Notes: generated by a model not told the origin, from the sequence alone. Shown: positions 29,176 through 64,000, counted from the stretch's first letter. The stretch: 64,000 bases of DNA from Gnetum montanum (GCA_015680685.1 MNCI01003059.1:464859-528858), one strand, 5' to 3'. Numbers and translations: made by a program.

Positions 29176-29177
<2 letters not shown>

Positions 29178-29209: not shown

Positions 29210-29213
<4 letters not shown>

Positions 29214-29477
29214 AAGTTCAACAAAAGATCTTACATGACATCTGCTTCTTGTATCTCCATGGTACAAGCATGAAACAATCCATAGTTACTAGAAAATGAA
29301 TACAAAAACCTAAGGAAACCTTCTACAAGCTTAACTTGAAGTTTCCACACTATTTCTATCTTTTGCCACCTTCTCTAAGCTATTCCAACTTGAAATAGTT
29401 AATTCTAGAACTTTCTTAGCCATATGGATCATCCCTGGCCTTCTTGAGTTGTCTCTTGTGAAAAATCCAACATTCAA

Positions 29478-29746
29478 GAGAGATGTCTCGTGAGAGTGGG
29501 AGACATATCCTTCATGGGGAAGATGTCTCCTCTACATTTAAGATACCTTTTCATGATATTTCTTCTCTATTTGGGAGATGATCCCTCTAAAGGATTCTTC
29601 ACTCCTGCGAAGATGTCTCCTCTTAGTGAGAGACGTCTCTTGCAAAGACTTAGCTCTTGGTAGAGACATCTTCTGCATGTTTGAAATGTCACCTATGTAG
29701 TCCCATCTCTTGAACAAGATGTCTCATTGACCTTCAAGATGTCTTC
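29478..29746. repeat. Cluster of decayed GAGACGTCTC palindromic motifs
   Basis: Intact gagacgtctc at ~29630, plus multiple aagatgtctc / gagacatc variants. Confidence 0.75.
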
Positions 29747-31325: not shown

Positions 31326-31592
31326 CAAGATGTCCTAGATCTTTTTGAGACATCTCTCTTGAAACCCAGTATCCTTATCAAGATGTCTTACCCATGCACA
31401 AGATGTCTCACCCAAGATGTCTTTCCCTATTTTAAGATGTCTCTACCAAGATGTCTCCTCCAAGTTTGACATGTCTCTTCATAGAACAAGACGACTCCTT
31501 CAGCTTAGAGACATCTTCCCTAAGATGTCTTAACACAAACTAAGATATCTCCTAAGCTTCCAAGATGTCTTATGATTTCCAAGAGATCTTTC
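31326..31592. repeat. Second cluster of decayed GAGACGTCTC motifs
   Basis: More than 10 caagatgtct / gagacatct variants in ~270 bp. Confidence 0.8.
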
Positions 31593-33108: not shown

Positions 33109-35871
33109 CTAAGTGGTGCTAGGTGGTGGTGGCTCCTCCATTGGTTGCTTTCCCTTGTTATTATGCTTTTGAAATTTGTATCTATTGAGCAACACTTGAA
33201 TTTTCTCTTCCTTCATTCTAGGATTATGTACCATCCATACTGATTATGCAATGTGTGATGGAGCTGGTACATTCCATGGACATGGTAGCTACAGAAAAAT
33301 CTTATTGGCCTTAATGTACCATGATGTAAACTACCTCCTCTTTTCTTCAAATGTCTTAGCCATCTTGTGTAACTTCTGATAATCAGACATTCTTCTGGCC
33401 AAGTTTGCTACAACATCTTTTTGCCCTTGGTAGATAGCCTTTACTACTTCTAGCTTAGAATTTTCCACCTAAAGCTTCTACAAAGCATCCTTACGATGAG
33501 CAAATTCGTTCTTATATAATGTGTATATGGTCACTACTTGATGTTCTAGCTTATTTTGGGCTTGCCCACTATTAACATGGCCAAGTTAGCATATTGCAAG
33601 TTTTCTAATCCCATGTATTCTATTAAATCTTCTATTTGTAGGTCTTTGTTTTTAATCTCTTCTTGGTGGACATGAGCATAGATATCCAAGATGCATTTCC
33701 AATTTGGATTTTGTACTTAAATGAATTTGACATGGGCCTTCACAATCTAGATTTCCTTCTCATTGACTTATTTGTACATGCCTACTTGATTGCGGAAATG
33801 TTCTTTAAGCCTTTCATGCCTCTTTGCTTCATTCTACCACATGCTTATTTCAATGGCTAATTTTTGTTAGATGGCTTATATTTCCTCCATTGAGAGGATT
33901 CTATTTTATTGTGCAAGGTGGCTCATATCCTAGTTGACCCACATTAGTTGTTCTCTTAACTGATGGATGCTCTCTTCAAGGATGTTTTTTACTTCTCCAC
34001 ATTGATCAATCTAGCATTGTTTATGGTAAGTTGTTTATTCTCTTCTTGTACTATGGTGAGTGTCTTAGCATGTTCATATGTCTATGCTTCAATGACTAAG
34101 GCATTCCACACCATTTTCTCTTTCACATTCTCCATCTACTTATTGTGCTCCATGAGGTATCTGATTTTCTCTATTCTAAACTACTCTAGTTGGTCAAGCA
34201 TAACATAATGTGTTGGATTTCTTTTTTTTACCCTTAGGATCATGCGCTCTTCCTATAATTTGTGAACTTCATTTTCTACATGCTCTACCCTAGTCTCTGC
34301 CATGACTAGCTTACCCTTGGTTATGATGAATTTTGATTACATTGTAATGACATCGCTTGGGATGTCAAAAAGATTTGTCATGACTTACCTTATCTGCAGT
34401 AGTTAGTCTAGCACATCTTCATGATTGGTAGGAGTCATTGAGGTACCAGCTAGCATTTGAACATCTCTGGCTTTAGAAAGATCAGTTGGTGGCACAATAG
34501 GTACATTGAAGGATTTATTTATGTGAGCTATGATAACTTTTGTGGCTCCTACTACATCCTGGTGTTGCATAACCACAACCATGGCTCCTTCTCCTGTTTC
34601 TAGCATCACTTAGAATGATGCAACATTTCCAGAAATCTGTTTTAACCATTACTTCTCTCCTCCTGACTACAATGAGATTTGTCCACTAGCAAGGTCTATG
34701 GAAGTTGTTGGTTGAATGACATTGTCAATGACTTTATATCCATTAGCCTACTCATGGGTTCCCCAATTGATGATCTCTACAATTTTTTGTAAATGACTCA
34801 TTAATGGCTTGTAATCTTGTGGTAGTGGTGGTGGAACTTGCTACTACCGCTGCTCTTGCTACTATCCATTGGGTCTTGCTTGTTGTTGTTGCATAGTAGT
34901 TTGGGTGGTTTCCCTAGTGTTTGTTTATTTCTCCACTTGGTCCTTCTTTGGTGGTGCTGGCTTGAGCATTTTAGCATAGGAAGCATTTTGAGCCTTCCTA
35001 GGGATGTCATTGGTGTACCCTAGGATTCGAACATGTTTGCACAACTTCCTAATGAGGCAAGGGAATGGAAGTGCTAGGTTCCTTGCCTTCTTTTCCTCAA
35101 ACCATTGTTGGGTTTTAAGAAAATAGAGGTGTGTGATGTTTGCCTTAAATTTTTCCATTAAGATTACACTTCCTTTGGCTACATATGTTGATATTCTGTT
35201 CAATATTTTTGTGGAAAACAAGTAATATGTGCCAATTTTGAAGTAGATCCTTTCTTTAGGAGTTAACTCATTATATTCCTTGTCATGTTTGCCATATGAT
35301 TTTTGCAATTAAATTTTTCTTATTTCTTTATCTAATTTGGTGGAGAGATGTGTTACTTTTGTCCCTTCATTGGGCACATTAAGGGGTTCAGCTATCACCT
35401 TGACAGAATAGAAGATTGAGACTCCCTCAATGTTTACTATTACATCTTTTCCTTCGTTGTGCTAAAATTGATGTCTTTTCCAAATGACATTTCTCATTGT
35501 TTGTAAATGTGGGCCATAACAGTGATGCTTGGAGTTGTGTCTTCATCACTTTTAGAGTAAATTCTAGGAATGGATCAAAGTTGAACTCTACAATCACTAT
35601 GGTTAGGATCGATTTCTCCTGGATGGCTTGGAGGCAATTTGGTGATAGCATGAGGTGTTGTCCTTGTGTTGTTGCTTGTGGATTTGTTGCCTATGCCTAG
35701 GCTGAGTGTTCCATAATAGGAGTTTCTTGATGGAGCTTAAAGGATTGGTCCTCCTATTCCACATGTTTTTCTTGTGGGGTCTATTCCCTTATTCAACCTC
35801 ATCCATTGTCTCTTGGCCTCTTGCTTGCTGGTTGTGAAAGGTCCTTCTATTGATCCTCTTTTTAGGGCCAT
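33109..35871 (-). pseudogene. Accessory (env-like position) ORF of element D, putative plant transposon protein-like plus coiled coil
   Basis: ATG at 35871 directly after an acceptor AG. Fragments FNFDPFLEFTLKVMKTQLQASLLWPTF and NLALPFPCLIRKLCKHVRI. Ends KGKQPMEEPPPPSTT* (stop 33109-33111). Homologous to 57219-58870. Confidence 0.7.
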
Positions 35872-39152: not shown

Positions 39153-40769
39153 CCTTCTGAGAAATTTGAATCTAAAGGGCCCTGGATCTACTATCTATGC
39201 TAAATAGAAATTACAGGACTTTGTTAGAACAAAAAACACACTTACAATCTGTTAATCCAGAATCTATATGTTTATGAATATGTGCTACTACAATTATATA
39301 GACTTGGATCCTTCCAAGAATGGATTTGAAGAGATAAGGATGAGTCTCTAAAATCATGGGAATGATCCTTATCATCTTATTTATGGATGAGATAATCATG
39401 GGTATGGATAAGCATGGATATGGAAAAGCATGGACAACTAGGATCTCATCTTATTTAGAATAAATAAAAGGATGAGATCAAGCTCCTAATAATGTGGAAT
39501 GTCTACACATCATCTTCTACAAACCCCCCCATGATGGTAAGGGGTTCCACTCCAAGGAGGTCTTTGAAGGATGAAAAATTCTCATAGCTTAGTGTTGGCG
39601 ACCGTTTGGGACGCGACCGCCAACGAGTGTCCTCGAATAGGATTTAGGTGCCTGCTGGTCTCTGGCAACACCAAGGTCCAGATACCTCCAAATAAACTCA
39701 GTAGTTAATGTGAGTATGTGTGTGTGCTGTTGCGGCGTGNNNNNNNNNNNNNNNNNNNNNNNNNNNNNNNNNNNNNNNNNNNNNNNNNNNNNNNNNNNNN
39801 NNNNNNNNNNNNNNNNNNNNNNNNNNNNNNNNNNNNNNNNNNNNNNNNNNNNNNNNNNNNNNNNNNNNNNNNNNNNNNNNNNNNNNNNNNNNNNNNNNNN
39901 NNNNNNNNNNNNNNNNNNNNNNNNNNNNNNNNNNNNNNNNNNNNNNNNNNNNNNNNNNNNNNNNNNNNNNNNNNNNNNNNNNNNNNNNNNNNNNNNNNNN
40001 NNNNNNNNNNNNNNNNNNNNNNNNNNNNNNNNNNNNNNNNNNNNNNNNNNNNNNNNNNNNNNNNNNNNNNNNNNNNNNNNNNNNNNNNNNNNNNNNNNNN
40101 NNNNNNNNNNNNNNNNNNNNNNNNNNNNNNNNNNNNNNNNNNNNNNNNNNNNNNNNNNNNNNNNNNNNNNNNNNNNNNNNNNNNNNNNNNNNNNNNNNNN
40201 NNNNNNNNNNNNNNNNNNNNNNNNNNNNNNNNNNNNNNNNNNNNNNNNNNNNNNNNNNNNNNNNNNNNNNNNNNNNNNNNNNNNNNNNNNNNNNNNNNNN
40301 NNNNNNNNNNNNNNNNNNNNNNNNNNNNNNNNNNNNNNNNNNNNNNNNNNNNNNNNNNNNNNNNNNNNNNNNNNNNNNNNNNNNNNNNNNNNNNNNNNNN
40401 NNNNNNNNNAAATGCATAACTCACAGGACCATGACAAAGAGGCTGAAATCTTTATTCTAGCAAGCCATCTTGCAAGCGATCTTCTTTACAAATCTTCTTT
40501 GATCCCAAGTGTGATGTGTGAGACCCAATGTTATGATCCAATGTTATGATGATCATCCCTTCCCCTTGAAGCCTTTTTATAGGATTCCAAGGTAGGTAGG
40601 GAAGTTACATATTTAAAAATATCTCACCTAACTTCTCTCCCAAGTAACCTGGCCAACCAATTAGGAGATTACTTGCCCAACAAGTTAGGAGGTTACTTGC
40701 CCAACAAGTTAGGTAAGTTACAACAATTTTGGGTGGTTTCAACCACCAAAGAGATAAAAATGCTACAAT

Positions 40770-46822: not shown

Positions 46823-49545
46823 ATATTCATAATTTTCTCCATTGAATACAAGAATTTGGAGAGATAGATTCGTTATTTTGGGCCATTCTAGAGAGATCTG
46901 TTGTCAAGAATCTGAGCTAACCGAGCTCTGATACCAAATGAGAAATCTAAATCTAAAGGGCCCTGGATCTACTATCTATGCTAAATAGAAATTAAAGAAC
47001 TTTGTTAGAACAAAAAACACACTTACAATCTATTAATCCAGAATCTATATGTTTATGAATATGTGCTACTACAATTATATAGACTTGGATCCTACCAAGA
47101 ATGGATTTGAAGAGATAAGCATGAGTCTCTAAAATCATGGNGCCAAGAATGGATTTGAAGAGATAAGCATGAGTCTCTAAAATCATGGGAATGATCCTTA
47201 TCATCTTATTTATGGATGAGATAATCATGGGTATGGATAAGCATGAACAACTAGGATCTCATCTTATTTAGAATAAATAAAAGGATGAGATTAATCTCCT
47301 AATAATATGGAACGTCTACACATCATCTTCCACACCTTCATGGACATTTAGTAAGATTCTTTGTTGGTCACACTCTAGCACACACCATTTGACTAGTTCA
47401 TTTGCATAGATCTTGTACATATTGCCATTAATTTCCATATATCTTTTTACTTTATGAAGGAATTGTTCCCATTGTTTCTTACTCCAGTCAACAAGAAGCT
47501 CTTGTGTTGATAGGTAGGTTAGATATTCTGCAATCCATGGATTTCCTATTAAATTTACAACCTTTACTAGTTTAGTAAACAAGTTCTCATTAGCGAACTG
47601 GTCAGATAAAGGTTTTGCTTAATCATGGGCATCCCACTTTAGCCTTGATAGATGATTAGCTACCACTTTTTTTGTTCCCTTTTTGCAAAATAACAAGCCA
47701 TCTTATCATCCTAGGATTGACTGCTAGTTTGTTCATAAGAAATTGGATGGCACTATGATTAGTATGGACATAAATTTGATACCCAAGCACATAATGTCTA
47801 AACTTTTCAAGTGCCTACACCATGACCATTAGCTCTTTTTCTGTTGTAGTGTAGTTCAATTGTACTTTGGTGATGCTTCTACTAACATAGTGTATATAAT
47901 AAGGTCTTTTTTCATCATCTAGTTATGTCCATATTGCACCAAGTGCATAATTGGAAGCATCAATCATGATATGAATGCCTAGACCAATCTAGAGCTTGAA
48001 GGATTGGTATATTAGCTAGTTTCTACTTTGAAGCTTCAAATGCCTTTCGCATGACTCTATCCACAGGATGCATCCTTCTTAGTGGGTTCCACAAGTAGTT
48101 TTGCTATCTTTGAAAAATTCTCTATAAATATTCTATAATATACTATGTGTCCTAAGAATAGTCTCACATATTTTACTATTTGTGATCTTTGAGTGATATT
48201 TTGTATGACTTGAATCTTTTTAGGATCTACCTTTATGTCTTTTTGAGAGATTTTATGTCTGAACACTATATCATCCTAGACCATGAGGTGGCTTTTTTGT
48301 CAATTAAGCTTGAGATTAGTTTCCACACATCTCTTCAGTAATTACTCCAAATGGTCCAATGCTTGCTTGAAATCAAGCTTGTATGTCAAAAAATTGTTCA
48401 TGAAGACCTCAACACCATTGGCAATTTTTTTATGGAAGATACTAAGTACTAGTCTTTGGAAGGTGGTTGATGCATTGTAAAGACCAAAGGGAATCTATAA
48501 GTAAGTGATGCGTCACAATTAGCTGTGTTGATGAGGCCTCATTGACTGGGCCCCATTGACACATTATGTCATGCATCGATGCAACCCCATCAACATAGGG
48601 TTCATTTTTGCTTATAAATACATGCTTATCAACCACATTTATAGCATTAGTTAGTCATAGTATAGTGAAGCTCTTACAACTTTTTCATTTGAGAGTTAGA
48701 ATATTTTCCCAAGTGCCTGCAATAGAATTCATTGAATGTACAAATCTTTATTTGAGTAGTATTGTACCTAAGCATGACAGTGTGTGGGGTAATAAAGACG
48801 AACTTCTTGATAAACCTTGTAGCATTTTGAATAGTTTAAATGTTTCATTTATGCATTTAATATTTTTAGGTAGTTATTCAATGTTTTCTAGTAATTAAGA
48901 TAATTATGTAATTAAGTGAGATAAGCTAGATAGATTAATTACATAAGTATGACCAATATGAGCGTAACACACATATGCTTGGTAATCCCAGTAGCATTAT
49001 TGCTTGGTGCACCTAGTGGCATAGCATTTGGTAACCTAGCAATGGATACGTGAGTTCAAGACATGTATAGGAAGTGGGACTAGATGCTTATGTTAGGACT
49101 AGTTAGAGATCAGTTAGTTCAATCAAATTAGTCATTAAACTACTTTATCTCTCTTTTCAACCACCAAAAAACCTAAAACATAAAATGATAGAAATCATAT
49201 GCCTTAATTACACTTAACCATACCTTTGAGCTTCACAAGTGTAATTGGGAAGGCAACGAACGATCTTATGGCAAGGTTCACTACCTAGAAGACTAGTGCA
49301 CTAGAAATTATAGAGTCCATGGAATTTGGCCAGATTACTTGTGAACGCTTTGTGATTTGTATGGTTGGGTGTAGGGGTACCTCACTGCTCATCATTAGTG
49401 CCATTGCTAGGGACTCTGTTTATTGAAACGTGCACTATCTAGAATTAGTAACCATTATTAATATTGTTGGATAAACTCAAGGTCAATATTATTCTCACAC
49501 AACATATAATTACAAAACCACACTAATATTTTACTAGTTGCAAAA

Positions 49546-52500
49546 TGTCTTCTTCTCATTGGCATGAAGATGTTAAATCAATAGTCCCACAGGAGTGCAA
49601 AGTGGTATATACTCATCTTGATGAGTATGTACCAGACTTCACCTTCATCCTACACCATGATGAGCAACTACGATGACATGACATGGAGGGCAACATCGTA
49701 ATGTCCCTTGATTGATCTATGCTTGGGATGCTATTTGAAACCCTTAAGAATTTAGGCATCTTAGATCTTCAAGAGGAATACATTGTGAATGGTTATGATA
49801 CTTGGGACTACCATCCCACTAAAACACAACACAATTGCAATCGACACTAAGAGAAGAACCATGAGTTTGCAAAGGAAAAACACTTTACTAATCCCTTATT
49901 CCTATTAAACCAAATTGATAATGAGGATCCTCCCTTTGGGGGTTCTCAACATGAAGATTCTCTACCCCCTATTATTGGTGATGAGGGTGTAGTCTTGAAC
50001 CTGTGGTCCACTATTAATAAACCAAGTTTAGGAAAAAGTGATAGTCAAGTTAGGAACTTGAGAAAACCTCATAATATCAAGGGATCTAAGAATGGTAATC
50101 ATAATGAGCAAAGAGGTGGTAAGAAACATCACGATGGTGGTGGTGATCCACCTTCCTCTTCATCCAATTCTAAACATTCTTGTTCATCTGCTGGTTCTAA
50201 TAAAAGCCATTGTAGACATAATCATGATGAAGGTGATCAATGAGATAACCATGACTGTCAAGACCACTATGAATGCAGGGGTGGCAAGAACCATCATCGA
50301 TGCCATGGATGCAATGATGATGATGAATTACTATTGGCAACTCAAAGCATGCTTAACATTGTAGAGGTAGTAAATATTTCAACTAGGCATGTGAAAGATA
50401 GTTGGATCAAATGTTTAGATATGAATAATATTCCAAGATTTAACAGGAAATACAACTCTAATCCATAGACACATTTACAATATTTCCATGATGTAGAAGA
50501 GTATAATAGAGATCCTTCCATAAGGAAAAGGGAGGTTCGATTTTGTGAAGAGGAGGATGCACCACTTGACAAGGTGGTAAATAGAAAAACCTTATCCATA
50601 CAAAAATCTGTTTATGATATTTTTGCTAAGGTTGATAAATTATGGAACTCTTTGGATGAAAAGTTCCAAACTACTATGAAGATTGTTGAAGCATCCAAAA
50701 CAGAATAGTGATCATGACCGCATAAGGTGAAAAGAAGCTGAACATGCCTACCAAAGAGGTAAGGGCAAAGCTATTGCAATAGAAGAAGTTATGAAGATAG
50801 ACTCTGATGATGATATTGGTTGTGAGATCTGCCAATATGAACATTTGAATGGATTTTATCCTATGGTTTCACACTTACAAGAGTTTGGTGTGTACGCATT
50901 GAATTTGTGGCTACCACATAGGTAAGCACCCAAAAAACTGCCTTATCCTTAAGGTAATTCAAGGTAGTTTCACCAACAACAACAAGCTTATTATCCAAGT
51001 AGAGCTCCACCATAACCATATGAGCAATACAACAATGGCACCAACCACAATTGTGGAGAATGCCACCACCAAGGTAGTAGTATCCTTGTAGGCAACTAGA
51101 TCCATATAGGTACTATGTTTAGCAACCTAGTTCTCCAAAAAGTTTTGCAAGCCATACCTCATTCTAGCATCACTATTACCCTCTAGAATACTATAGAGCT
51201 CATTCACCATCTACTCAAGGGGAGAACCCATACCCATACCACCCTCCACATCCATCTACATACATCCCTCTACCCTCTACTTAGTTACCTCTTACTCCAT
51301 CCATGCAAGGTGAGATTCTTGCATAGCTGCAACAACAAAATGCTATAAGGGCAATGAATTTACAACTAGCCTTACACTTAATCTAGAAAATGACCATATT
51401 TTTGATCCAACAGTCCTCCCAAACCCTCACAACCTAATGTGGTTGGTCATCCTACATCTCCAACACCCTCATCTTCTACATCAAATACACTTGAGAGCCC
51501 TTCAAACCAAACACCATCTTAGATCCACACTATAATGCAATCTTTCCATGAAAATATCTAACTTAGAAAGTCCTCTTATTTACTTGCTTATCGTTGGACA
51601 TGAGCCATGCAAGGCTCTTCTTAACTCTGGTTCTAGTGTCAATCTCATCTCTCATGACATGTACAAGGCTTGGAACCTACTACCTCTCAAGAAGAGCAAC
51701 ATTCGTTTAGAATTGGTAAACTAATCAATCACTATTCCTTTGGGGTTAGTGGAGGACATTGTGATCATAGTTAGTAGGTGGTCCTATCCTACTAATTTTC
51801 TAGTGATCAAGGTTGAGAATTGCAAAGGTGAATTTCACATCATTATGGGAAGGACATGGTTATGCATGGTCATTGCACAAATGGGCATAAGGGACCTCTC
51901 CTTCAAAATCTCCAAGGAAAATGAATTTGGATGATTAGAGAAGAAGCATGTTTCATGCATCATGTATAGTGATAATAGGTGAAATTACGTGCAAAATATC
52001 TGGCTCATTAAAAGTACATTCATTAGAGTATGCAATTAGTGTGCACAAGAAACAGATATCCAAAGGTGTTTGTACATAGTAGCCACAAGATAGGAGGGTA
52101 CCTAGTGGTTGACAACTGACTCTAATAGTAGCACACTATGCATGGAACCAACTGAGAACTTGACATGTGCTTATGTCAAAGGCATGAATAAACTTGAGTA
52201 AGTTCATCACCAAATCTCTAATGATGAAGATAATGATACTTACTGGGAAGAGTTGGAAATCCTTGATAATTTCAAGGAGGAGCCCCTAGAGTTAAAAACT
52301 CTATTAGCCAGCATGGAGTATGCATTTTTAAACAATGGCAAGCTAGTTATCATCAATGCCAAAATTGCTCTTGAAGAAAAAAAAAGCTATTAAAGGTACT
52401 CAAAAAATGATCAACAACATTTGCTTGGTCATATCCTGATCTGATTGGAATCAATCCAAGGATATGCCAGCATCAGATTTACATCAACCTAACCATGAAG

Positions 52501-55173
52501 CCAAGAAGGTAGCCATAGAGGCAGTTGAACCCCAAATTGAAGCAGATCATCAAGGAGGAAATAGAATAGCTCCTCAAGGTAGGGTTCATCTATCCTATTG
52601 TGGATAGTGAGTGGGTTAGCCCACTTGTAATTATGTCCAAGAAAAGAGGGAAGTGGTGGGTTTGCATTGATTTTAGGTTGTTAAATGTGGCAACATTTAA
52701 AGATCATTTTCCATTGTCATTTGTGGAGAAAGTGTTGGACACTATTTCTAGGCATTGCTATTATAGCTTCTTGGATGGTTATAGTGGCTATAACCAAATC
52801 CAAATTGTGCCAGAATATCAGGCCAAGACAACATTCATGAGTCCTTGGGGGACTTTTACATATTGTAAGATGCCATTTGGTCTATGCAATGCCCTTGCAA
52901 CATTTCAATGCTAGTTCCTTAGTATTTTCCAATAGAAAATTGGTAGCATGGTAGAGGTCTTAATGGATGGCTTCTATACCTATGGGGCTACATTTGAGCA
53001 AGCTTTGGATCACCTTGAGTAGGTTCTAAAAAGATGTGTTGAAACAAACCTTAGGCTCAATTGGTAGAAAAGCCATCTAATGATCTAGGAAGGCATAGTA
53101 CTGGGGCACAAAATTTCACAAGAAGAGATTGAGGTAGGCCCTACAAAGATAAGGGTCATCCAAGGAATTACATGCCAACTAGAGATAGTTAAAGATGTCT
53201 AATCATTCATTGGACACATTGGCTACTACTGGTGATTCATAGAAAATTTCTCTAAAGTTGCAAAATTGTTGGTCGAGCTTATGAATAAAGATGCTCCATT
53301 CATCTGGACTAAGGAATGTGAACATGCATTCCAACAATTAAAAGATAAACTCATAGAAACTCCAAGTCTACAAGCACTAGACTAGTCTAGACCATTTTAC
53401 ATAATGACAAATGCATCTAATTATGACTTGGTTGTCGTGCTTATGTAGTTGGATGATAAGAAATTTCCATATTACATACACTAAGTGAGTTGAAGCATTG
53501 TGGATGCACAGTTAAATTACATCACAACTGAGAAAGAATTAATGGTAGTGGTGTATGCTCTTGAAAAATTCAGGCACTATGTGCTTGATTATAAGGTGTT
53601 TGTGCATATAGCCCACAATGCCATTCACTTCCTAATGAACAAACCAATGGTAAGTCCCTGTATCATATGGTGGCTCATGATCTTGTAGGAATTCAATCTC
53701 ATTATGGTAGATTAGAAAGGAATTAAGAACGTGATTGCTGGCCACCTCTCTTGATTAAGATGAGATAATAAGGAGGAGAAGCTTCTCTTTAATCAATTTC
53801 CAAATAAAATCCTCTTTACAAGAGCAATCAATGACCAAGTGCCCATTAAAAAAAATGGTACGATGACATCCTCACTTACCTTCTCACTCAGGAGATGCCA
53901 CAAGGTCTAGACTTTAGGAAGAAATAATAGTTTCTTTATTAGGCAAAGTACTTCATGGAAATCAACGGACACCTTTACAAGATGTGTGTCGATGGCCTAG
54001 TTCATTGGTGTGTCTCTGATGCAGATCAATTATGCATTCTCCAAGGATGCTCATGAAGGGTCTTGTGGAGGCCATTATGCAGGGAGACATATGGCCATAA
54101 AAATCCAGGTGGCAAGATACTATTAGCCTACAATCTTTAGGGATGCCTACCAATTTGTTTGATCTTGTGAGAGTTGTCAACGAGATGGTGGGATGACTAC
54201 TTGAATGGAGGGTCCTTAACAGTGGATTCAACCACTAGAGCCCTTTAACATATGGGGCATTGACTTCATGGGTTTCATCACATCCATGTCCAATGAAAAG
54301 GCATATATCATTGTAGTAATCAACTACTACACAAAATGGGCAAAAGCAATAGCTATTACCGATTATACATCATCCACTACTTCTAGATTCTTACAACAAA
54401 ATGTTATAAACAAGTTTGGGGTGCCACATGCACTAATTTCTGACAATGGAACTTAATTTATAGGTGCCACCTTTTGAAAACTTATGCAACGCTTTGGGGT
54501 AGAACATTAATTAACAACACCCTATCACCCTGAAGCCAACGGTTAAGTAGAGGTAACTAACAGGAAGATTACAAAGATCCTAACAAGGACCATAAGCAAA
54601 TATAGGAGAGATTGGAGCACAAAACTCAATGATTCCCACTAGGCCTATTGCTCAACATGAAAAATTCTTATTGGCTACTCTTCCTATGAGCTAGTGTATG
54701 AAAAAATTCCAACACTCTTGATTCAATCTGAGCTCTATACACTCTTAATAGCTTGTGATCAGAATCTTGACCTAAGTCTAGCACAAAAGGAAAGACTAAT
54801 CAACCTCAATATGCTCAACAAAAACCAACTAGTGGCCCTATATTTGAATGAGGTGCATAAGGCATTTAACAAGCAACATCATGACCTTAAAATATGGAAA
54901 GTGAAATTTCAACTAGGAGATAAGGTTCTGTACTGGAACCCCACACACATATCCTAGAAAACAAAGTTCCAAACTTTGTGGAAGGGACCTTATATAATTG
55001 ATCAAACCTTTTCCTCTGGTGCCATGTTGATCTACAAACCTAAGAACCCACATAGAAAGCAGTTGGTCAACATCCAAGAAGTGAAACCTTTCCTAGAGCC
55101 AAGAGAAGTCATTACAACTACCACCTCAATGGATGGACAACCATGCTCCATTTTCTACATCTCTTCCCTTTAA
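49546..55173 (+). pseudogene. gag-pol of element E
   Basis: PR KALLNSGSSVNL...IIMGRTWL; RT WVSPLVIMSKK...VCIDFRLLN...FLDGYSGYNQI...MPFGLCNA; RH YITTEKELMVVVYALEKFRHY; INT YYTKWAKA...LISDNGT; WKGPY. Confidence 0.9.
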
Positions 55174-57218: not shown

Positions 57219-58870
57219 ATGGTGCGAAGACTAAAACGACTATAGGAGTGAGGACCCTCTCAACCAAGGAAGAAATGGCATAGATCTATAAGAACAAGCC
57301 CAAGAGCTCTAGAGGAAACCCATGTAATGGAACCTCTTTGAGAGGAGCCTAAGGTGGAATTTTTTTGACAGATTCCTAAAGAAGAAGTTCCAATAGAATA
57401 ATTGTAGCAAGGGGAAGCACTAGGACCCATACCAAGGCTTGAAGTCACATTAACACAAGCCTGCCTCGACACCATCAAGCCTCATGATATCTAGCACTTA
57501 GTTCTCTAGGAACTAAACTTTAGGCCATTTTAGAGCATGCTTTAGTAGAGGTGAAAACACAATTGCAAACTTCTTCCAAGTGGCCAATCATCACTTCCAG
57601 TGGTGAGTGGTACATGGGAGAGATGTACCTCTTCTAGAACAATAAAAGGGCAAGCTCTACAATGAAGATTAAGGATATTCAAGTGTTCTACTCAACTAAA
57701 GTTATCGCATAGGCACTTGGGTTACTTGATATCATGACACAACTAGCAGAGCTGTTAATGCAAGCTAACCCTGAGGCTAAAAAGAAGTGGCCTAGTGGTG
57801 TTACAGGGCTAACTGTAAGGAGTTCAATGTGCTCACATCGGCGGAGCACATATACTTTAAAATAGCAACCTATTACCTCAATCTAATGGTGAGGCCTAGT
57901 AAGGTGACTACCTTTTTTGCCCAAGAATACACCATTCAAAGTGGGAGATTTCCAACAAACCTTCCATAATTGATCTATTTAGAGATCAAGAAGCACTTCA
58001 AAGAAAATGAACATGGAAGGAAAACCCTATCTTTTCTATGCCTTATTCAGAAACTTTAGAAAAGGGTAAGGATTATCTGATATGCAAATGACACAATTAG
58101 GCATGCTCCTTTGGCCTTGTGATCTGAAATGTTAGAGGACAAGACACCTGTTGTGACTAAAAAAAGGTAGTAGTTGCCACCTCCACCACCTACACAAGAA
58201 ACAACGTTAGATGCACATGTAGCTATTGAGCACTTGCATGAAATCTGAGAACAGCTCTTATGTGAGCAAGAGTAACAAGTAGGAACGAGTGGTGGAGATT
58301 CATCTGCATATTGACTTGCAATGAGTCACCTTAATGAGGTGGCTCAGACAATTAGCTAGATGGAAAGAGGTGGATTGATATTTTTTGTCCAATGAACGTA
58401 GTTTTCCCTAAGGTTGGATCCCAATGCTCAAGAGGTAATGGTGTCTTTATCTCAACACCATTTATTCTCAGAGATCTCTAGGAATGCCACCTTCTTTTCA
58501 ATGTTGTTAAAGGAAGGTGAGTGGGCAATTGTATTGGTGATGTAGCACCAAGAATAGGAAACAACTACTAAAGTTGTTGCTGATCGAAATGTTGAAGTGC
58601 TCAATGCACCTACAACATCTGTATCAGGCGTATTTGCACTTCAAGATGTGCAGATGTCTGCAGGCATGGTCAAAAAAAAAATTGAGTGTAGCCTAACACA
58701 AAGAGTTACTGGATCGACTGGTGGGTATCGAGCAACCGATTCTCGATATCTTCAATTTTTTGGATAACATTACTGCAACCTAGTTAGAGCTATTGGAAGC
58801 AAAGTGTAAGTGCATCATCCTAAAAGGGCAACTTGAAACAGCCTAAGCACAAAACTAATGCTTGGCCATG
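57219..58870 (+). pseudogene. Accessory ORF of element E (homolog of the element D accessory ORF), 3' truncated
   Basis: ELNFRPF/LEHALVEVKTQLQTSSKWPII...VFYSTKVIA*ALG...NLP*LIYLEIKKHF...LSFLCLIQKL aligns with the element D fragments. Confidence 0.7.
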
Positions 58871-59342
58871 AAAGTTGCTAAACTGTGTGCCTGTTTTGCT
58901 GATCCCACACTTCCAATATTGCTCTTCTTCAATATCACCACTTCCTTTGTAGCTTTCCTTCATCGTCGTTGTAGCTTTTTTCTCCACCGCTGTTGGATTC
59001 CAGCACCATTATAGTGCTTTGCTCTGCTGCTGTTCTGTTCATTATTGTTATTGACGGACGCTTGCAGTCTTGTCATTGTATAGTGGTCGAACCCTCATGT
59101 CCACTGAACAAACGTGAGGGCTTTCCTAAACCCTATACTTCTTTAGCTCTGCCAAAAGATCTGACTTCATGACTGATCACTATTTTAAAAACTATTTGTA
59201 ATAGATGCTAGTATCACTTTCCACCCCTATCTTGACCAGTATGAGTGGGGCCCATTCTTTTTTTTTTTTTATCTTTTTTTTAAAAGCTTGTACTAACATG
59301 CTCATCTCCTTGCCTTAGCTTCACCTACCTAGCCGCATTGCC

Positions 59343-59388
59343 TTAGCACATTGAAGAGGGGTGCAAGTCCCGAAAATGTTTTGTGTAA
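59343..59388 (+). ncRNA. Hammerhead ribozyme copy 1 (type I minimal; C3>T mutated)
   Basis: ttagcaca-TTGAAGA-gggg tgcaag tccc-GAAA-atgttt-tgtgtaa; stems I and II pair. Confidence 0.75.
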
Positions 59389-60053
59389 CAACTAACGTTG
59401 TGCAATGTCATGAGCTTTTCCTTCGCTGCATTACCATTTCTTTGCCAAGCCACATGAGATCCATTCAAAATTTTGTAAGTCCTAAAATTTTTTAAGTTTA
59501 AAAATTTGAGGAATGAATGAAAGATTGTGGTGTCATTCCTCCAAATTTCTCTGCAATGCAACCTGCGGCAAAATGCCCAGAAAAGGCAAAATTGTGGCAC
59601 GCTACATTAGTTTACTGTTTTGCAGTTGTAGGGTGCTACTGAAACCTGACTTAGTGGTTGTGGAGCTCATCGACATCCTGTTTTGCATCGACTGTAGTTT
59701 TTTCTAGCAGCAGCAGGCATTGGGTTCTCAGCCTAACGTCAATCTGCTGCAACAACCTCAATCTTCACGGTGACAAAAATGGCAAAAACAGTGAGATAAT
59801 TTTCAACACACCAGCAGAATAATTAGAAAAATCGACAACAACAGTCTTTTCTTTTTAAAAAACTAGCAGAATCAACAATAGCGATAGTTAAACCCTAGAT
59901 CCATGTCACGGCAGGGAGATTGCGGTGGTAGATCTGCAAATGGCGGTGATTTTCTTGTTAATCGCAGTGGTTTTTCTTGCGCTGATTCGTGTTAGGGGCC
60001 CTAATCTGCGAGAGGGTTTGGGCTTTTTTTAGAGTTTGGAGGGTTTTTCTAGC

Positions 60054-62717
60054 ATGCGTGGCAGTGTGCGTGACTCTCGAGGAGGTGGCTGGCATGATGG
60101 CCGAGGAAACATGCAGGGTGGTCGAGGTAGCTCGCAAGGTGCATGAATTGGAGCACAAGGAAGCGCATGAGCACAACATTGACTGCACCTGCATCATAAA
60201 ACAAGTGTTGCCCGCGGCAGCAACTCTAACGACGGTGCTCAGACTTTCTCCAACCGTGGTGCCCAATCCTTCAACGGTGGTGGATTCAGCCGTGGTGGTA
60301 GCTTCAGACGCAGCAACGGCGGTAGTAGGGTCAGCCGCTTTGATCTCAGAAATGACGGCAATTGTCAGGATTTTCAGAGATCGTGTTAGGGCAGCAGTGC
60401 TTTAAACTATGGTTTAAGCAATAATGTAAATGATGATGTTGTAAATAACTGAGGGCTAAATGAAAATTTAAACTTGAAGTGCCCCGCTCGTACCAATTCA
60501 CCACCGGCCAGGCCCCACCCTCAAACACTAAATCAAGACCCTCCACCACATCCCAACACATCTACAACCCATCTGCCCCCTTCATCCACTCCTTTTCATT
60601 TTGTAGCGACTTCAACCTCCACTCCAGTTGCCTCTCGGCCATTAACTGTAGTCTGTGCCCCAAACAACCCCCTGCCAAATCTCTTTTTTGCACTATTTAC
60701 ACCACTACCTGAACACCACCTGCTGAAATTTGCATCGTTTATTTAGAACTTCTTCCATGATTGCGTTTAAATTTTCGGTTGCCTACCATCAACCAAACTT
60801 TGTACGCACGTTTGCTCTTTGTGCGTAAAATAGTTCGTGAAATTGAAAATCACATCTTTAATCTTGTGATCCATAACTTTTTATCACGCTCTCTTTTAGC
60901 AAACGAAATTAAAGTTCTAGGCTTTGGACTTAAATTCATCCCTGGGCTCCTTCCATGGATTGAAACTCCATTCTTAAAGAATTCACTGCTTTTGCTCAGC
61001 TTTTTCAACTTGAGAATTTCTTTAAAAATAAACCTAAAGATACATTTTCATCTTCACCATTTATTATATCAACTCAGATTCCTAAAATAAAATTTTGCTA
61101 TTGTAATAATTGGAATCCTCTAATTAGTAGTTTCAATCTCGAGCTCAAAAATTGCATTCGCAATTACCTTGCTTCCCTTAAAGCTACACTCTCCTCTCTT
61201 GATTTCAGCCACTGACAACCTCTTCTTTGTCTTCTTAGAGCACTTCAAGAACTTCAAAAAGACACAAGCATCATCATTCGATCTGTAGATAAAAATCTTG
61301 GAGTTTGTGTTCTGGATTCCTCTTAGTATCTTAAAGAAGCAACCAGGCAAGTTTCAGATTTAGATATTTATTTGCATGTGAATTCTATTCCATAAGATGA
61401 TCTTTGTCGTTAATTCTTTTTCATCATCAACCGTTTCCCACAGGTTTTTAAAAATTTTAAGGATTCATTGCTTCAATACAAGGCCCCTAAACCTTGTAAT
61501 TTTTATTTAATCCTTAAAATTCACAAACCTGTAATGGTGGCTGCCCAATTTGCTCCTACACAGGTTATGTGCTTGAATTCGCCTCTCACATCCTTCATTA
61601 TTTGCTATTTTTTATCCTTTTTCCCAACCATATCATTTTCAGGATTCCTCTACCTTGATCCATGATCTCCATTTAAGAGTTCTACCTCTTAATATACTTT
61701 TGTTTACATTTGATGTAGAATCTCTTTACCCCAACATCTCCACTGATCATAACATTGTTGCCCTTAAAGATATGGTTAAAACATATTTTTCTACAAACCC
61801 ATTCTCCTTGCAGAATCTCTATATCAACGCCATTCTGGAGCTCGTTTCATTGGTGGTTTGAAAGCACTATTTGGAATTCAATGAAGTACAATATAAATAG
61901 ATTAGAGGCATCGCAATAGGTAGAAATTTTGCTATTTTCTACGCATGTCTTTTTCTGTGCCATCTTGAAAGACAAGTTTTCAATACTTTTGATTCCCAAA
62001 ATCTTTTGTATTTCAAAAGAGTTATTGATGATGCTTTTGACATCTGGAATGAATTTGAAGATTCTCTTTTTTTCCTTTTTTCCTGATATTGTAATTTTTA
62101 TCCATTAATCAACATTACCCCTACCATTTCTAATTCTATAGTTAATATTTTGGATGTCACTTTCTTCAAGGGACCTCATTTTGTTAAAACTGGTATCCTT
62201 TCTACTAAGTGTTATCAGAAACTCTTGAATGCATATCAGTACATCCCTTTCTCCTCATGGCATCCATTTTATTAGAAGAAAGCATTCATTATTGTAGAAC
62301 TTAAACAATAACTCAGTAGGGAATTATGTTTTGACGATCTTTAGTAGATTCAGTGACAACTCTTCTGATGACTTCATGCTTGAGGATATCCTTCTCACCT
62401 ACTGCTTAAATGCTTCAACCTTGTTCCTGTTGCTTTTTGCTGATCACTTCTGGTTAGACTTCAACAAAGTAATGACGTTTATGTTAGGAAATGGACCCTT
62501 CTCATCTTCAAATTGGATTTTAGTACTTCTATTAAATCCTTGAACGTGAGGGCCCTCCTAAGCCCTATACTTGATTAGCTTCGCCAAAAAGATCTGACTT
62601 TCCAGAACATCATTATAGATGTGGTGACTTGTTTGTTGAAATCCTAAAAAGCTACGTTTATTCCTTGTTAAGAATAGATTCAAGTGCTTCGTCTCACCCC
62701 CACTTCAGCTTGAATGA
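60054..62717 (+). pseudogene. Penelope-like reverse transcriptase ORF with RGG-rich N-terminus; no GIY-YIG domain detected
   Basis: IHNFLSRSLLANEIKVLGFGLKFIP (PLE N-terminal motif), DKNLG, FYLILKIHKP, FDVESLYPNI (~61709), GIAIGRNFA (~61907), FKRVIDDAF (~62012), NILDVTF, YQYIPFSSWHP, LHA*GYP. Stops and frameshifts are present. Confidence 0.88.
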
Positions 62718-63109
62718 GTGGGGCCCAATTAAATTTTTAGTTTGCTTCCAATTTTAGATTTTCTAAGTTGGGACATTATAAATCAAGCACTTGTGCTCTT
62801 GACTTTGCCCATGTAAGCTTAAGATAAGAATTCTTGAAAATGTTTTATATTTTAGCTTTACTTGGTTAATGTCAATTTGAGCTTTCTTTTTTTTTTCTAA
62901 TTTTTTTCCTCGTCTGCTTTTCTATTTTGTATTTTCATTAGTTGAACAAGATCCCAACAAAATTTTTTCAAACAAATTTTTTTTTTCAAACCCAAAATTA
63001 TTTCTTTTTTTGTTTTATCTTTTTTTTTTAAGTTGAGAACCTATAAATTCATTGTATTGGCATGCTCATCTCCTTACCTTTATAGCTTTGGCTACTTGGC
63101 CGCATTGCC

Positions 63110-63156
63110 TTAGCACACTGAAGAGGGGTGTAAGTCCTCGAAAACATTTTGTGTAA
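63110..63156 (+). ncRNA. Hammerhead ribozyme copy 2 (type I minimal; core intact)
   Basis: ttagcaca-CTGAAGA-gggg tgtaagt cctc-GAAA-acattt-tgtgtaa; stem I is extended by gcattgc/gcaatgc. Confidence 0.85.
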
Positions 63157-63960
63157 CTAACGTTGTGCAATGCCATGAGCGTTTCAGTTTTTTAGCTTCT
63201 CCTTTGCTGCATTACCATTCCTTTCCCAAGCTGCACAAGATCCATTCAAAATTTTTTAAGTCCTAAAATTTCTCTTTGTCTTGCTACCTTCAAAAGGTTG
63301 AACTCTGCATGCTAGGCAACTACTATTTTCTGGATTCTAACCATTTTCATTTTTTTTTGTTTTTGGTTAGACATATCCTTTGTAGGTTCATCACGATTGA
63401 TTCTCATTGCTAGACTTTGCGGACCATGACATGATGCTACATCTAGTCCCATGTCTTGGGAAACTACCCGGCTTATGTGGATCCTTTTGGTTGTGGTTCT
63501 TTCGATACCACTCTTCTTCAGTATCACCACTTCCTTTGCAACTTTCCTTCAGTGTTGTTGTAGCTTTTTTCTCTGCCACTGTTGGATCCCAGCATCGTTG
63601 TCGCTCTCTGCTTCACTGCTGTTGATGGCTTCCATTCGTTGTTGTTGTCGATGGATGCCTGCGATCTTGTCATCGTATAGTGGTTGGACCCCTCATGTCC
63701 ATTGAACAAACATGAAGGCCTTCCTAAACCCTATACTTCTTCGACTTTGCCAAAAGATCCAACTTCATGACTAATCACCATTTGAAAATTTTTTTGTATT
63801 AGATGCTAGTACCACTTCCCATCCCCATCTCGGCCAATACGAGTGGGGCCTGTTCTTTTTTTGTTTTATCTTTTTTTTTGAAGTTGGGAGCCTATAAATT
63901 CATTGTACTGGCATGCTTATCTCCTTGCCTCTGTAGTTTCGAATGCCTAGCTACATTGCC

Positions 63961-64000
63961 TTAGCACACTAAAGAAGGATGCAAGTCCCCAAAAATGTTT
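63961..64000 (+). ncRNA. Hammerhead ribozyme copy 3 (degenerate, truncated by window end)
   Basis: ttagcaca-ctaaaga-aggatgcaagtcccc-aaaa-atgttt; homologous to copies 1 and 2, with core G>A changes. Confidence 0.65.

Follow-up and report, generated by a model that had tools for sequence, protein, structure and literature searches.

An old, inactive head-to-tail array that very probably derives from one endonuclease-deficient Penelope-like retrotransposon family of land plants

In the stretch described here, four or more copies of one endonuclease-deficient Penelope-like retrotransposon (EN(-) PLE) family, within the land-plant EN(-) PLE clade, very probably form an old and inactive array, joined head to tail; all coordinates refer to the window, the whole 64-kb stretch of DNA that was analysed. 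Unit B, a dead copy, is the sole one in the chain that bears a reverse transcriptase (RT). Of the ORF, the short derivatives A and C retain just the final ~25-30 codons, together with the 3' UTR, and so have no RT; unit D is a 3' module whose 5' part has been truncated away. The element is a further member of the EN(-) hammerhead PLEs already published for Selaginella and conifers, and represents no new system. The original prediction, a terminon-like chain built on an endonuclease-less PLE, held for the PLE RT, the absence of an endonuclease, the head-to-tail order and the hammerhead-bearing module, but not for the terminon label.

Units of the array and the decayed reverse transcriptase

Table 1 Features of the array and its left flank
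Feature	Position	Strand	Basis or remark
Left flank, not part of the PLE chain	58100..58887	.	very high-copy repeat
Unit A, RT-less short unit	58910..59490	+	77-83% identity to unit C over whole length
Unit B 5' region	59491..60760	+	without recognisable domain (translations, Pfam)
Unit B decayed PLE RT ORF	60761..62717	+	tblastn, phmmer, tree, C-terminus alignment
Unit B own 3' module (mod1), strongly decayed	62709..62985 (end approximate)	+	four-way alignment, weak self-similarity
Unit D, 3' module only	62986..63271	+	four-way alignment; repeats
Type I hammerhead motif of unit D	63096..63176	+	descriptor scan, covariance model
Intervening stretch, D terminus to A/C homology	63272..63498 (227 nt)	+	low to moderate copy
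Unit C, RT-less, runs to window end	63499..64000	+	alignments with unit A, sequence read

The PLE-type RT predicted on the plus strand was recovered by tblastn of relatives, by the tree described below and by its RT motifs. The relatives' proteins mapped by tblastn to 60773-62717 (+), with E values of 1e-45 to 1e-70 for Selaginella and other relatives, and the closest proteins were Cryptomeria LOC proteins and Ginkgo Gb_11119 (50% identity over 61619-62308, combined E 3e-76). Consistently, one 73-aa piece of the window matched Selaginella XP_024523476 and Ginkgo Gb_11119 in phmmer. The translations carry the N-terminal motifs IHNF..KVLGFGLKFIP and DKN, the RT motifs FDVESLYPNI, GIAIG and VIDD, the thumb YIPFSSWHP, and also IIIRSVDKNLGVCVLD and KIHKP. 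The RT closes with the family C-terminus NPKKLRLFLVKNRF...LQLE, followed by a TGA stop at 62715-62717, which falls ~105 codons past ...LHA*GYP, close to the ~110 aa first proposed. Its N-terminal motifs and its grouping with PLE RTs, including GIY-YIG fusions, identify it as a PLE RT. The RT, first placed at 60054-62717, is not an open frame: the translations reveal no fewer than 10 stops and 3 frameshifts.

Upstream of the RT, the translated 5' region of unit B contains an RG-rich stretch (60054-60390) and a Pro-rich stretch (60453-60743), matching the RGG- and Pro-rich N-terminal part noted before. A Pfam search of this region (59491-60760) gave no match, and tblastn with the relatives' ORF1 and the Ginkgo N-termini found none at E <0.5. 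Word depth is near single-copy (7-40) at 59873-60463.

We located the common 3' module in the order GAGTGGGGCC, T-tract, hammerhead-like block and terminus TAAGTCCTAAAATTT, with ends where they had been placed, near 59490 and 63270. GAGTGGGGCC occurs at 59243-59252, 62716-62725 and 63841-63850, and the terminus at 59476-59490 (unit A) and 63257-63271 (unit D); a 35-nt module block is present in three copies in the window versus none in 100 shuffles. In the family as a whole, every unit closes with a T-tract and a TATA box, then a type I hammerhead and a tail of ~120 nt. The repeats, the four-way alignment and the match to a covariance model confirm the head-to-tail units sharing this module. 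The original count of three units has to be raised to four, namely A, B, the 280-nt 5'-truncated D, and 63272-63498 plus C, which follow one another head to tail, a tandem or partial-tandem organisation, with unit sizes of 0.28-3.5 kb.

Unit A begins with a 5' part of unassigned origin (58910-59089), followed by an ORF-tail remnant (59090-59252) that includes CCTAAACCCTA at 59125-59135 and ends in the first GAGTGGGGCC. Its T-tract spans 59257-59281, its TATA box is deleted, and its hammerhead (core 59351-59381) is dead, with C3>U at 59351. Unit C retains an ORF-tail remnant at 63682-63780, with CCTAAACCCTA at 63723-63733, and its GAGTGGGGCC is followed by a T-tract and TATAAAT (63893-63899); its hammerhead, with a core from 63969, is likewise dead (G5>A and G12>C). 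A tblastn search for RT in these two units found ~25 C-terminal codons only (NVRAFLNPILL.LCQKI), a weak match with E values of 0.026-0.18 in unit A and 2.6e-4 in unit C.

Unit D comprises a T-tract (63000-63029), TATAAAT (63042-63048), an intact hammerhead and a tail ending in TAAGTCCTAAAATTT. In the module of unit B itself, GAGTGGGGCC and a remnant of TATAAAT are preserved, but of the hammerhead only the 3' half (TTGAAAATGTTTTATAT) is left; the 5' strand of helix I and the CUGANGAG core were lost in a deletion of 35 nt, and the terminus is eroded to TCAAACAAATTTT. Self-similarity is weak, linking 62789-62985 to 63094-63277 and 62675-62815 to 63800-63935. Judged from these alignments, the well-kept module at ~62985-63271 does not belong to unit B, whose module is the decayed one, but forms a unit of its own, the 5'-truncated D. 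The modules differ from one another by indels and so do not stem from a single template. For 63272-63498, comparison with the upstream flank of unit A and with the 5' region of unit B gave scores within the shuffle range, and paralogous contigs exist; the stretch is most simply explained as the 5' part of a C-type unit, missing from A by 5' truncation. The three complete 3' termini in the window are followed by three different sequences.

The hammerhead motif and the units without RT

All invariant hammerhead core bases are kept in unit D only, not in A or C. In helix I, CACA (63114-63117) faces UGUG (63150-63153), extended by UUAG/CUAA and GCAUUGC/GCAAUGC. The core CUGAAGA lies at 63118-63124, helix II is formed by GGGG/CCUC with a 7-nt loop, G12-A15.1 occupies 63140-63143, and stem III is AACAUU; with CUGAAGA, GAAA, A..U and U17, the invariant type I core (C3 U4 G5 A6 N7 G8 A9, G12 A13 A14, A15.1-U16.1, H17) is complete (63118-63149), flanked by helices I and II, of which helix I is open-ended. 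Cleavage is predicted after U17, between 63149 and 63150.

An Rfam scan of the window detected no hammerhead at the gathering threshold, nor at E up to 10. Despite this miss, the descriptor scan, covariation and an independent covariance model all indicate that the hammerhead is real. The descriptor scan returned the unit D motif as the single match on both strands of the 64 kb, and a covariance model (R1), built from the relatives' hammerheads alone with the window sequence left out, ranked 63110-63157 top in the window (21.9 bits, E ~9e-5). The same kind of scan yielded 22 sense-strand matches downstream of or beside RT ORFs versus ~0.15 per shuffle set. One antisense match inside an ORF is probably due to chance. 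In the relatives' hammerhead alignment, 93.9% of cells are paired, compared with 30-40% in slid controls, and double-sided changes number 35, where shuffles give 12.7. The centroid fold of the unit D motif contains helices I and II, each in a register 1-2 nt off the hammerhead pairing, and its stability is not above that of shuffles (z -0.95). The motif, identified by sequence, lies in a repeat flanking the ORF, as expected of a PLE. RNA reads, which are few and come from paralogs, show no ends at 63149/63150, and six of them span the cleavage site uncut. For an animal PLE, insertion in vitro did not need hammerhead cleavage (PMC11167929).

The relatives' module anatomy comes from metagenomic loci more distant than Ginkgo and Cryptomeria. 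There, 27 of 30 distinct relatives have a TATA box before CUGA at a fixed distance of 36-39 or 51-53 nt, over a TATA background of 0.8 per kb; in units D and C the distance is 76 nt. In the relatives an ORF1 also precedes the RT ORF and overlaps it, and one locus (L018) holds two different units in tandem, 4,633 nt apart.

Word depth is biased toward the 3' module, and the family looks abundant on this 3'-biased depth, with hundreds of contig equivalents as a rough figure. A possible, though doubtful, reading sees in A and C non-autonomous elements of a retrozyme-like kind, whose hammerhead-processed and possibly circular RNAs were copied in trans by the EN(-) PLE RT, so that the chain would be a mixed array of parasite and host. 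A and C have ~580 nt in common but share with B only the ORF tail and the 3' module, a pattern in line with this reading, yet both of their hammerheads are dead and the 5' parts peculiar to them have a low copy number (depth 33-90). Also in its favour, the 3' module greatly outnumbers the RT, and ~850 nt separate the D cleavage site from the C hammerhead, within the size range reported for retrozymes; the RNA reads, in contrast, have no ends at the cleavage site, and known plant retrozymes carry type III hammerheads and use the machinery of LTR retrotransposons. We prefer to regard A and C as short derivatives of the PLE family.

Flanks and telomeric context

Summed contig word depth is 2,400-35,000 in the left flank and ~90 from 58888. 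A gypsy pol lies upstream of the left-flank repeat at 51.7-55.2 kb (+), where visual inspection of the stop-free pieces at 51725-54954 picked out motifs of protease, RT, RNase H and integrase; no LTR pair or matching LTR copy including the left flank was found within the window. The suggestion that the chain interrupts a gypsy element is therefore borne out in part, in that the repeat on its left is downstream of gypsy pol, while the right flank is beyond the window and the LTR pair is missing. Because the right end of the chain also lies beyond the window, terminal addition, break repair and nested insertion fit alike. Entry at a break, or by means of an endonuclease acting in trans, as originally suggested, is a conjecture. 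The A/B junction recurs in contigs of two closely related organisms.

As originally stated, the 64-kb window contains no telomeric array. At the unit junctions no CCCTAAA runs were found, the single match being a degenerate CCTAAAA; the telomere-like words in the window are CCTAAAA at each terminus and the 11-mer CCTAAACCCTA in the ORF tail, encoding L-N-P. Among the relatives, (CCCTAAA) runs of at least 11 nt number 54 on the sense strand versus 1 on the antisense strand, the orientation expected if the 3' end of the element were attached. Their telomeric clusters lie 300-500 nt past the hammerhead, and three loci (L035, L036 and L047) continue into long (CCCTAAA)n arrays. The placement at a telomere typical of EN(-) PLEs, with the 3' end on telomeric repeats, was thus found in these three loci and not in the window.

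Terminons, which Arkhipova et al. reportedly described in 2017, are said to be giant multi-ORF composites around Athena RTs at bdelloid telomeres. The array studied here has units of at most 3.5 kb, the RT remnant is the sole recognisable coding part, and the context is interstitial; giant units of tens of kb and extra ORFs are absent. Since all PLEs are ordinarily organised in tandem or partial-tandem arrays with hammerhead-bearing repeats (PMC11167929, PMC8557442), and neither giant units nor telomeric arrays are present here, the label is unsupported. It is also unlikely that the chain is a true telomeric structure, left over from one terminal addition after another at what was once a chromosome end and is now internal. 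Every visible 3' end is complete while the 5' ends vary, as in telomeric retrotransposon arrays, and units of different subtypes adjoin; however, template switching in one integration, or ordinary PLE partial-tandem formation, gives a like pattern (PMC11167929). The relatives' junctions with (CCCTAAA)n arrays speak for such a relic, whereas the window has no telomeric repeats between units or elsewhere, save the 11-mer, the chain adjoins on its left a high-copy repeat of interstitial type, and giant multi-ORF units are absent.

A lineage without endonuclease and its place among known elements

In the tree, the window RT is sister to Ginkgo (SH-aLRT 83), and the pair falls inside a gymnosperm clade (98), itself inside a plant clade with Selaginella (100). 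This land-plant clade unites the window RT with Ginkgo, Cryptomeria and Selaginella proteins, and the GIY-YIG-bearing RTs branch outside it. The phylogeny was built without named Athena, Coprina or other reference PLEs, so the comparison with Athena and Coprina is by described features.

In agreement with the original prediction, no GIY-YIG domain was recognised in stop-free pieces of the unit B region, including those from 59491-60760. The domain could instead have been present in intact family members, and we found it in 0 of 17 clade members (PF01541, E up to 0.1) and in 0 of the top 40 hits. The identical model detected it in two remote relatives, P0049 (E 5e-9) and P0085 (E 7e-6), in which a comparable RT is joined to a C-terminal GIY-YIG domain. 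The relatives' ORFs stop directly past NPRxLxSxLVRSR, and the C-terminal motif is common to the window copy and the 17 intact clade members. Given these 17 domain-less relatives, the shared C-terminal end and a model that does detect P0049 and P0085, absence of the endonuclease is a trait of the lineage rather than a deletion in the window copy. A canonical EN(+) PLE such as a conifer Dryad that lost its GIY-YIG domain is thus highly improbable and was rejected: the window copy is heavily decayed and conifers do host Dryads (PMC8557442, PMC9033089), but its terminal motif and stop position are those of intact domain-less relatives, the domain is missing across the clade with a working positive control, and the RTs that bear it lie outside.

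Among known systems, the nearest are the EN(-) PLEs with hammerheads published for Selaginella and conifers (Gladyshev & Arkhipova 2007; Lin et al. 2016), as described in papers citing them (PMC4209133, PMC8557442, PMC9033089). They share with the window element a GIY-YIG-less PLE RT and a plant host; Selaginella XP_024523476 sits in the same fully supported clade, the relatives of the window element are likewise joined to telomeric repeats, and in both the ORF-flanking repeat holds a type I hammerhead whose stem III is short and whose loop is palindromic, as described for Selaginella PLEs (PMC4209133). Unlike them, at least as those citing papers describe them, the window copy is interstitial, decayed, devoid of telomeric repeats and chained with RT-less units, and its family looks abundant. 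Chlamys PLE-X EN(-) families occur in Selaginella and Chara with canonical hammerheads, in Chara with a genome-wide distribution and no known source of nicks, and their proteins bear a CxC motif as well as an extension at the N-terminus that contains CxC (PMC8557442). Plant host, missing endonuclease and hammerhead are common to both, but the relatives' N-termini show no CxC upstream of the RT by eye (e.g. P0013, P0016), and the window chain has no 28S rDNA context. Athena/Coprina elements and bdelloid Terminons resemble the window element in lacking an endonuclease and in a hammerhead near the 3' end, and its relatives further match Athena/Coprina in head-to-tail arrays, in an ORF1 that precedes and overlaps the RT ORF, and in short telomeric stretches, in reverse complement, close to the 3' end (PMC8557442); the window differs in having no giant composite units, extra ORFs or telomere. 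Canonical EN(+) PLEs (Penelope/Poseidon, Dryads) share the RT motifs including the N-terminal DKN(G), a pLTR-like tandem organisation, and a hammerhead in the repeat with a fixed 3' 'tail' past it (PMC11167929), whereas the window copy and its clade are without GIY-YIG.

How such an array might arise can be sketched. Transcription would start just before the hammerhead, from the TATA box that the upstream unit carries in its 3' module, and the RNA would extend into the downstream unit. The hammerhead, with its palindromic stem III, is probably active only as a dimer and would trim the leader. The RT may then prime on a free DNA 3' end, at a chromosome end or a break, with ...CCTAAAATTT, the fixed terminus, as its starting point; loss of 5' sequence by truncation or erosion, with template switching or repeated additions, would yield arrays with complete 3' ends and variable 5' ends, and RT-less units carrying the common module could be copied in trans. 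We tentatively propose, as a possibility we hold less likely than its opposite, that a gymnosperm lineage of nuclease-less PLEs spread to hundreds of interstitial copies through one module combining a promoter that serves the next unit downstream by a TATA box at fixed spacing, a dimer-type hammerhead and an RT entry site, which also mobilised RT-less partners. If true, these partners would be retrozyme-like elements of plants whose hammerhead is of type I, in the animal style.

Unit B and its endonuclease-free family

Unit B, the sole unit of the chain with a reverse transcriptase (RT), carries the RT motif series of a Penelope-like element (PLE), which in translation is spread over three frames with at least ten stop codons. 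The motifs read, in order, IHNF..KVLGFGLKFIP, IIIRSVDKNLGVCVLD, LILKIHKP / GCPICSYTGYVLEFASHILHYLL, LFTFDVESLYPNI and YK*IRGIAIGRNFAIFYACLFL, followed by KRVIDDAFDIW, ILDVTFFKG, YQYIPFSSWHP, LHA*GYP, LLIFKLDF and NPKKLRLFLVKNRF...LQLE, then a stop. The RG- and Pro-rich N-terminal side of the original prediction was recovered as two stretches, both located 5' of the RT. Because the stop-free pieces of unit B are short and decayed, Pfam gave nothing meaningful in ten RT pieces and eight 5' pieces, and no piece of the 5' region (59491-60760) matched a domain. A word-index protein search with a 94-aa RT piece returned zero matches, since the index is too insensitive for a piece so decayed, and a PDB profile search with the clade alignment found no match at E up to 0.01. 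A protein cluster search yielded short eukaryotic clusters from rotifers and flatworms only, a few of them with RVT_1, which is a lead and not evidence.

With one 73-aa piece (61640-61858) as the query against 1.84 billion representatives, phmmer gave nine matches, among them a 580-aa protein of Selaginella moellendorffii (XP_024523476) and the 658-aa product of Ginkgo gene model Gb_11119. Relatives aligned onto the window by tblastn covered 60773-62717, the Ginkgo protein showing 50% identity over 61619-62308 (combined E 3e-76). A search with this Ginkgo protein collected 79 relatives; the closest are, in Cryptomeria japonica, entries named ‘uncharacterized protein LOC...’ and, on contigs of 3.7-3.9 kb, ORFs of 600-630 aa. 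We then placed the window RT, read through with X at each break, in a maximum likelihood tree (LG+G4, quick search) of 81 rows, none of them a named Athena or Coprina reference. The sister of the window RT is the Ginkgo protein (SH-aLRT 83), both lying within a nine-row gymnosperm clade (98) that is itself part of a 23-row clade with Selaginella proteins (100), and the three relatives bearing the GIY-YIG endonuclease fall outside the plant clade. Two Ginkgo proteins annotated as host ‘uncharacterized proteins’, P0002 and P0028 (Gb_11119 and Gb_17826), are ORFs of PLEs without this endonuclease (EN(-) PLEs), as are the Cryptomeria LOC entries P0012, P0013, P0020, P0021, P0023 and P0040, likewise annotated as ‘uncharacterized proteins’; some of the Ginkgo and Cryptomeria PLE gene models are fused or truncated.

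The endonuclease question was answered from natural intact relatives. The ORF of unit B stops at TGA 62715-62717, right after NPKKLRLFLVKNRF, and NPKKLRLFLVKNRF aligns with NPRKLGSFLLRSRF, the last motif conserved among the intact relatives; in these, the stop comes no more than a few codons from it. The GIY-YIG model of Pfam matched 0/17 aligned clade members at E up to 0.1; as a positive control, the same model detected a C-terminal domain in the remote relatives P0049 (5e-9) and P0085 (7e-6). Given the shared ORF end, the absence of GIY-YIG from the clade, the working control and a 5' region without a domain match, we rejected the reading of unit B as a deleted copy of an endonuclease-bearing element, for example conifer Dryad. 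A PLE-type RT lacking GIY-YIG, as originally predicted, is borne out by the clade members, the ORF end and the tree; judged from these sequences, the absent endonuclease is a property of the family and not of the unit B copy.

Metagenomic relatives possess a 600-900-aa ORF1 that overlaps the ~660-aa RT ORF by about 16 nt (L003, L005, L010, L016, L018, L019 and L028; e.g. L016:1-2502 and L018:6136-8364). These ORF1s are homologous to one another and to the N-termini of Ginkgo Gb_11119 and Gb_17826. In the six relatives tested, ORF1 gave no significant Pfam match and no nuclease; a DHR-2_Lobe_A match (E 0.007, below its cut-off), the only weak one, was dismissed. Homology to the relatives' ORF1 went undetected in unit B, leaving an ORF1-homologue reading of its 5' region unsupported.

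The chain of units and its 3' module

The units are arranged in the order A / B / D / (63272-63498 + C). The original prediction of a hammerhead-punctuated head-to-tail chain holds as regards units with a shared 3' module and needs correcting by an extra unit, since the module of B is separate from that of D. A four-way alignment reveals a strongly decayed 3' module that belongs to B itself and from which a 35-nt deletion took out the 5' half of the hammerhead; the well-kept module that follows therefore represents a further, 5'-truncated unit, D. What units A and C share with B is limited to the 3' UTR and ~58 nt of the ORF tail (62543-62600), and in neither does tblastn detect more than the last ~25-30 codons (NVRAFLNPILL.LCQKI), at weak scores (A, E 0.026-0.18; C, 2.6e-4). 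Neither is a B-type copy simply truncated at its 5' end; both are RT-less derivatives. The 227 nt at 63272-63498 were considered as a homologue of A's upstream flank or of B's 5' region; they match neither, with scores within the shuffle range, and this origin was rejected. Most simply, they are the 5' part of the C-type unit, a part absent from A. The three visible 3' termini are each complete and followed by different sequence, and the 5' ends are variable.

Features of the array in window positions, with the type I hammerhead of unit D
Feature	Position	Description
Unit A	58910-59490	77-83% identical to C along whole length
RG-rich stretch, unit B	60054-60390	
Pro-rich stretch, unit B	60453-60743	
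RT motif series, unit B	60761-62717 (+)	
3' module, unit B	62709 to ~62985	
Unit D	~62986-63271	
Unit C	63499 to window end	77-83% identical to A along whole length
3' terminus	59476-59490	TAAGTCCTAAAATTT
3' terminus	~62968-62986	decayed to TCAAACAAATTTT...
3' terminus	63257-63271	TAAGTCCTAAAATTT
TATAAAT, unit D	63042-63048	
TATAAAT, unit C	63893-63899	
Hammerhead helix I		CACA/UGUG, extended by UUAG/CUAA and GCAUUGC/GCAAUGC
Hammerhead core	63118-63124; 63140-63143; 63149	CUGAAGA; GAAA; U17
Hammerhead helix II		GGGG/CCUC, 7-nt loop
Hammerhead stem III		AACAUU
Telomere-like 11-mers	59125-59135; 63723-63733	CCTAAACCCTA

Three independent checks support the predicted hammerhead motif in unit D. 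Rfam returned no family for the window at the gathering threshold or at E up to 10, its hammerhead models missing the short-stem-III form of unit D. A structural descriptor matched once in the whole window, at the unit D hammerhead, and in 69 related metagenomic loci it gave 21 sense-strand matches, located downstream of or beside RT ORFs, together with one antisense match inside an ORF that is probably chance (~0.15 matches are expected per shuffled set). Stem III in the relatives' matches is a 6-nt palindrome (ACAUGU, ACUAGU, ACCGGU, AUGCAU), followed by U17. Among 18 relatives' hammerheads, 93.9% of cells are paired, compared with 30-40% in slid controls, and double-sided changes occupy 35 cells versus 12.7 in shuffles, a value reached by 0/500 shuffles. 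Finally, the top-ranking site in the window for the covariance model R1, which was built from relatives' hammerheads only, is 63110-63157 (21.9 bits, rough E 9e-5). R1 also produced a weak partial match at 52333-52364 (-) (14.7 bits, E 0.025) inside gypsy pol, without helix II and most of the core, which is probably chance.

The other copies have core mutations, C3>U in A and G5>A plus G12>C in C. Units A and C share the stem III sequence AAUGUU, and D has AACAUU, as would be expected if the CpG of a palindromic AACGUU had decayed, on one strand or the other. The single-molecule fold of the unit D hammerhead is not more stable than shuffles, which fits a dimer-type ribozyme; such activity has been described for the canonical type I hammerheads of PLEs (PMC4209133).

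Upstream of CUGA, a TATA box is present at 36-39 nt (51-53 nt in one subgroup) in 27/30 distinct relatives (loci L001-L060, e.g. L015:2494-2565 and L035:5729-5805), on a background of 0.8 per kb. In units D and C, TATAAAT lies 76 nt upstream of CUGA, before a longer helix I. This fixed spacing suggests that transcription would begin just ahead of the hammerhead, and that the 3' module of one unit may be the promoter of the next. In the searchable papers we found no mention of a fixed TATA-to-hammerhead spacing. RNA reads are few (125), partial and from paralogs, and with such reads no pile-up of ends was seen at the predicted cleavage site. Six paralog reads (run X10, 63154) cross this site into a variant helix I strand, …CACAACAGATGTTGTGCAATGC…; therefore, either uncut RNA of the module family exists at a low level, or some DNA is present in the library.

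An array within a repeat-rich internal region

EN(-) PLEs are seen as telomerase relatives that are, in general, confined to chromosome ends. The relatives examined here show both tandem arrangement, with two different units 4,633 nt apart in L018, and telomeric repeats: (CCCTAAA) runs of at least 11 nt number 54 in sense versus 1 in antisense orientation and cluster 300-500 nt after the hammerhead, and L035, L036 and L047 continue into long (CCCTAAA)n arrays. The same arrangement has been published for telomere-attached EN(-) PLEs (PMC8557442). No (CCCTAAA) array is found in the window, where the sole telomere-like 11-mers fall within the ORF tail, coding for the L-N-P of the conserved C-terminal motif. 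L015:2149-2162 is a comparable run in the ORF tail, an ...AAAC variant of CCTAAACCCTA encoding L-N-P(K), and other subgroups have L-D-P in this motif, encoded as TTAGATCCC. The likeness of this coding stretch to telomeric repeats may be coincidental or may reflect dual use.

Contigs of three closely related organisms were aligned to the window at a likeness of at least 85%. A very high-copy repeat makes up the left flank (58100-58887), and depth drops ~50-fold at 58888. Within it, 58297-58493 reaches a summed contig depth of 27,000-35,000, versus 6-9 for single-copy contigs, and is among the most repeated sequences of the genome; many paralogous loose ends occur at 58321, 58364 and 58511. By contig depth, the 5' region of unit B is near single copy. 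The RT bins have a depth of 200-1,000 and the hammerhead bins of 1,400-5,500 (single contigs, ~6-9); summed contig depth is not a copy number, and we read it only as an indication that the family appears abundant and 3'-biased. Contigs from two of the three organisms (B and C) span the junction of units A and B with 1-3% differences, so the array predates the split of these organisms. Alignment joints such as 59139>62578 and 59461>63248 were rejected as empty sites, being cross-mapping of paralogous modules.

The chain had been predicted to interrupt a gypsy element. By eye, stop-free pieces of the + strand at 51.7-55.2 kb show gypsy protease, RT, RNase H and integrase motifs; since no LTR pair in the window includes the left flank and the right flank lies beyond the window, an interruption is plausible only. 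Elsewhere, the direct repeats 39158-39521 and 46939-47334, ~7.8 kb apart (96% over 202 nt, 89% over 208 nt), may represent another element's LTRs or terminal repeats.

Proposed mechanism and significance

Established for the family are a nuclease-free RT, arrays, complete 3' ends with variable 5' ends, and a 3' module that combines a T-tract, a TATA box, a hammerhead and a tail; telomere attachment is established in relatives. In the mechanism that we propose, the 3' module of an upstream unit would drive transcription into the downstream unit, the hammerhead would trim the leader, probably as a dimer, and the RT would use a free 3' end of DNA, beginning at the fixed terminus. On multi-unit RNA, the site at which PLE RTs are known to start is a defined internal ‘tail’ (PMC11167929). 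The array would grow by template switching or by repeated additions, and RT-less units with the shared module would be copied in trans.

EN(-) PLEs with canonical type I hammerheads in their repeats are known from Selaginella (PMC4209133), Pinus taeda and Picea abies also have published EN(-) PLEs (PMC9033089, citing Lin et al. 2016), and PLEs normally form tandem arrays whose repeats bear hammerheads (PMC11167929). The present finding therefore joins a known type, and such arrays being ordinary, the terminon-like character first proposed is not supported. Three features may be new. One is that an apparently abundant EN(-) family forms an internal array embedded in repeats; the others are the RT-less partner units and the fixed TATA-to-hammerhead spacing. 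How EN(-) families reach internal sites is a question raised explicitly for Chara PLE-X (PMC8557442).

At this locus a plant EN(-) PLE array occupies an internal site rich in repeats, and the array is common to close relatives of the host species. Because this internal array is shared and the family apparently abundant, the host genome is a usable system for where EN(-) PLEs integrate and what supplies the 3'-OH. The Ginkgo and Cryptomeria ‘uncharacterized proteins’ are shown to be PLE ORFs, and the fixed TATA-to-hammerhead spacing leads to a concrete, testable model for the role of the PLE hammerhead.
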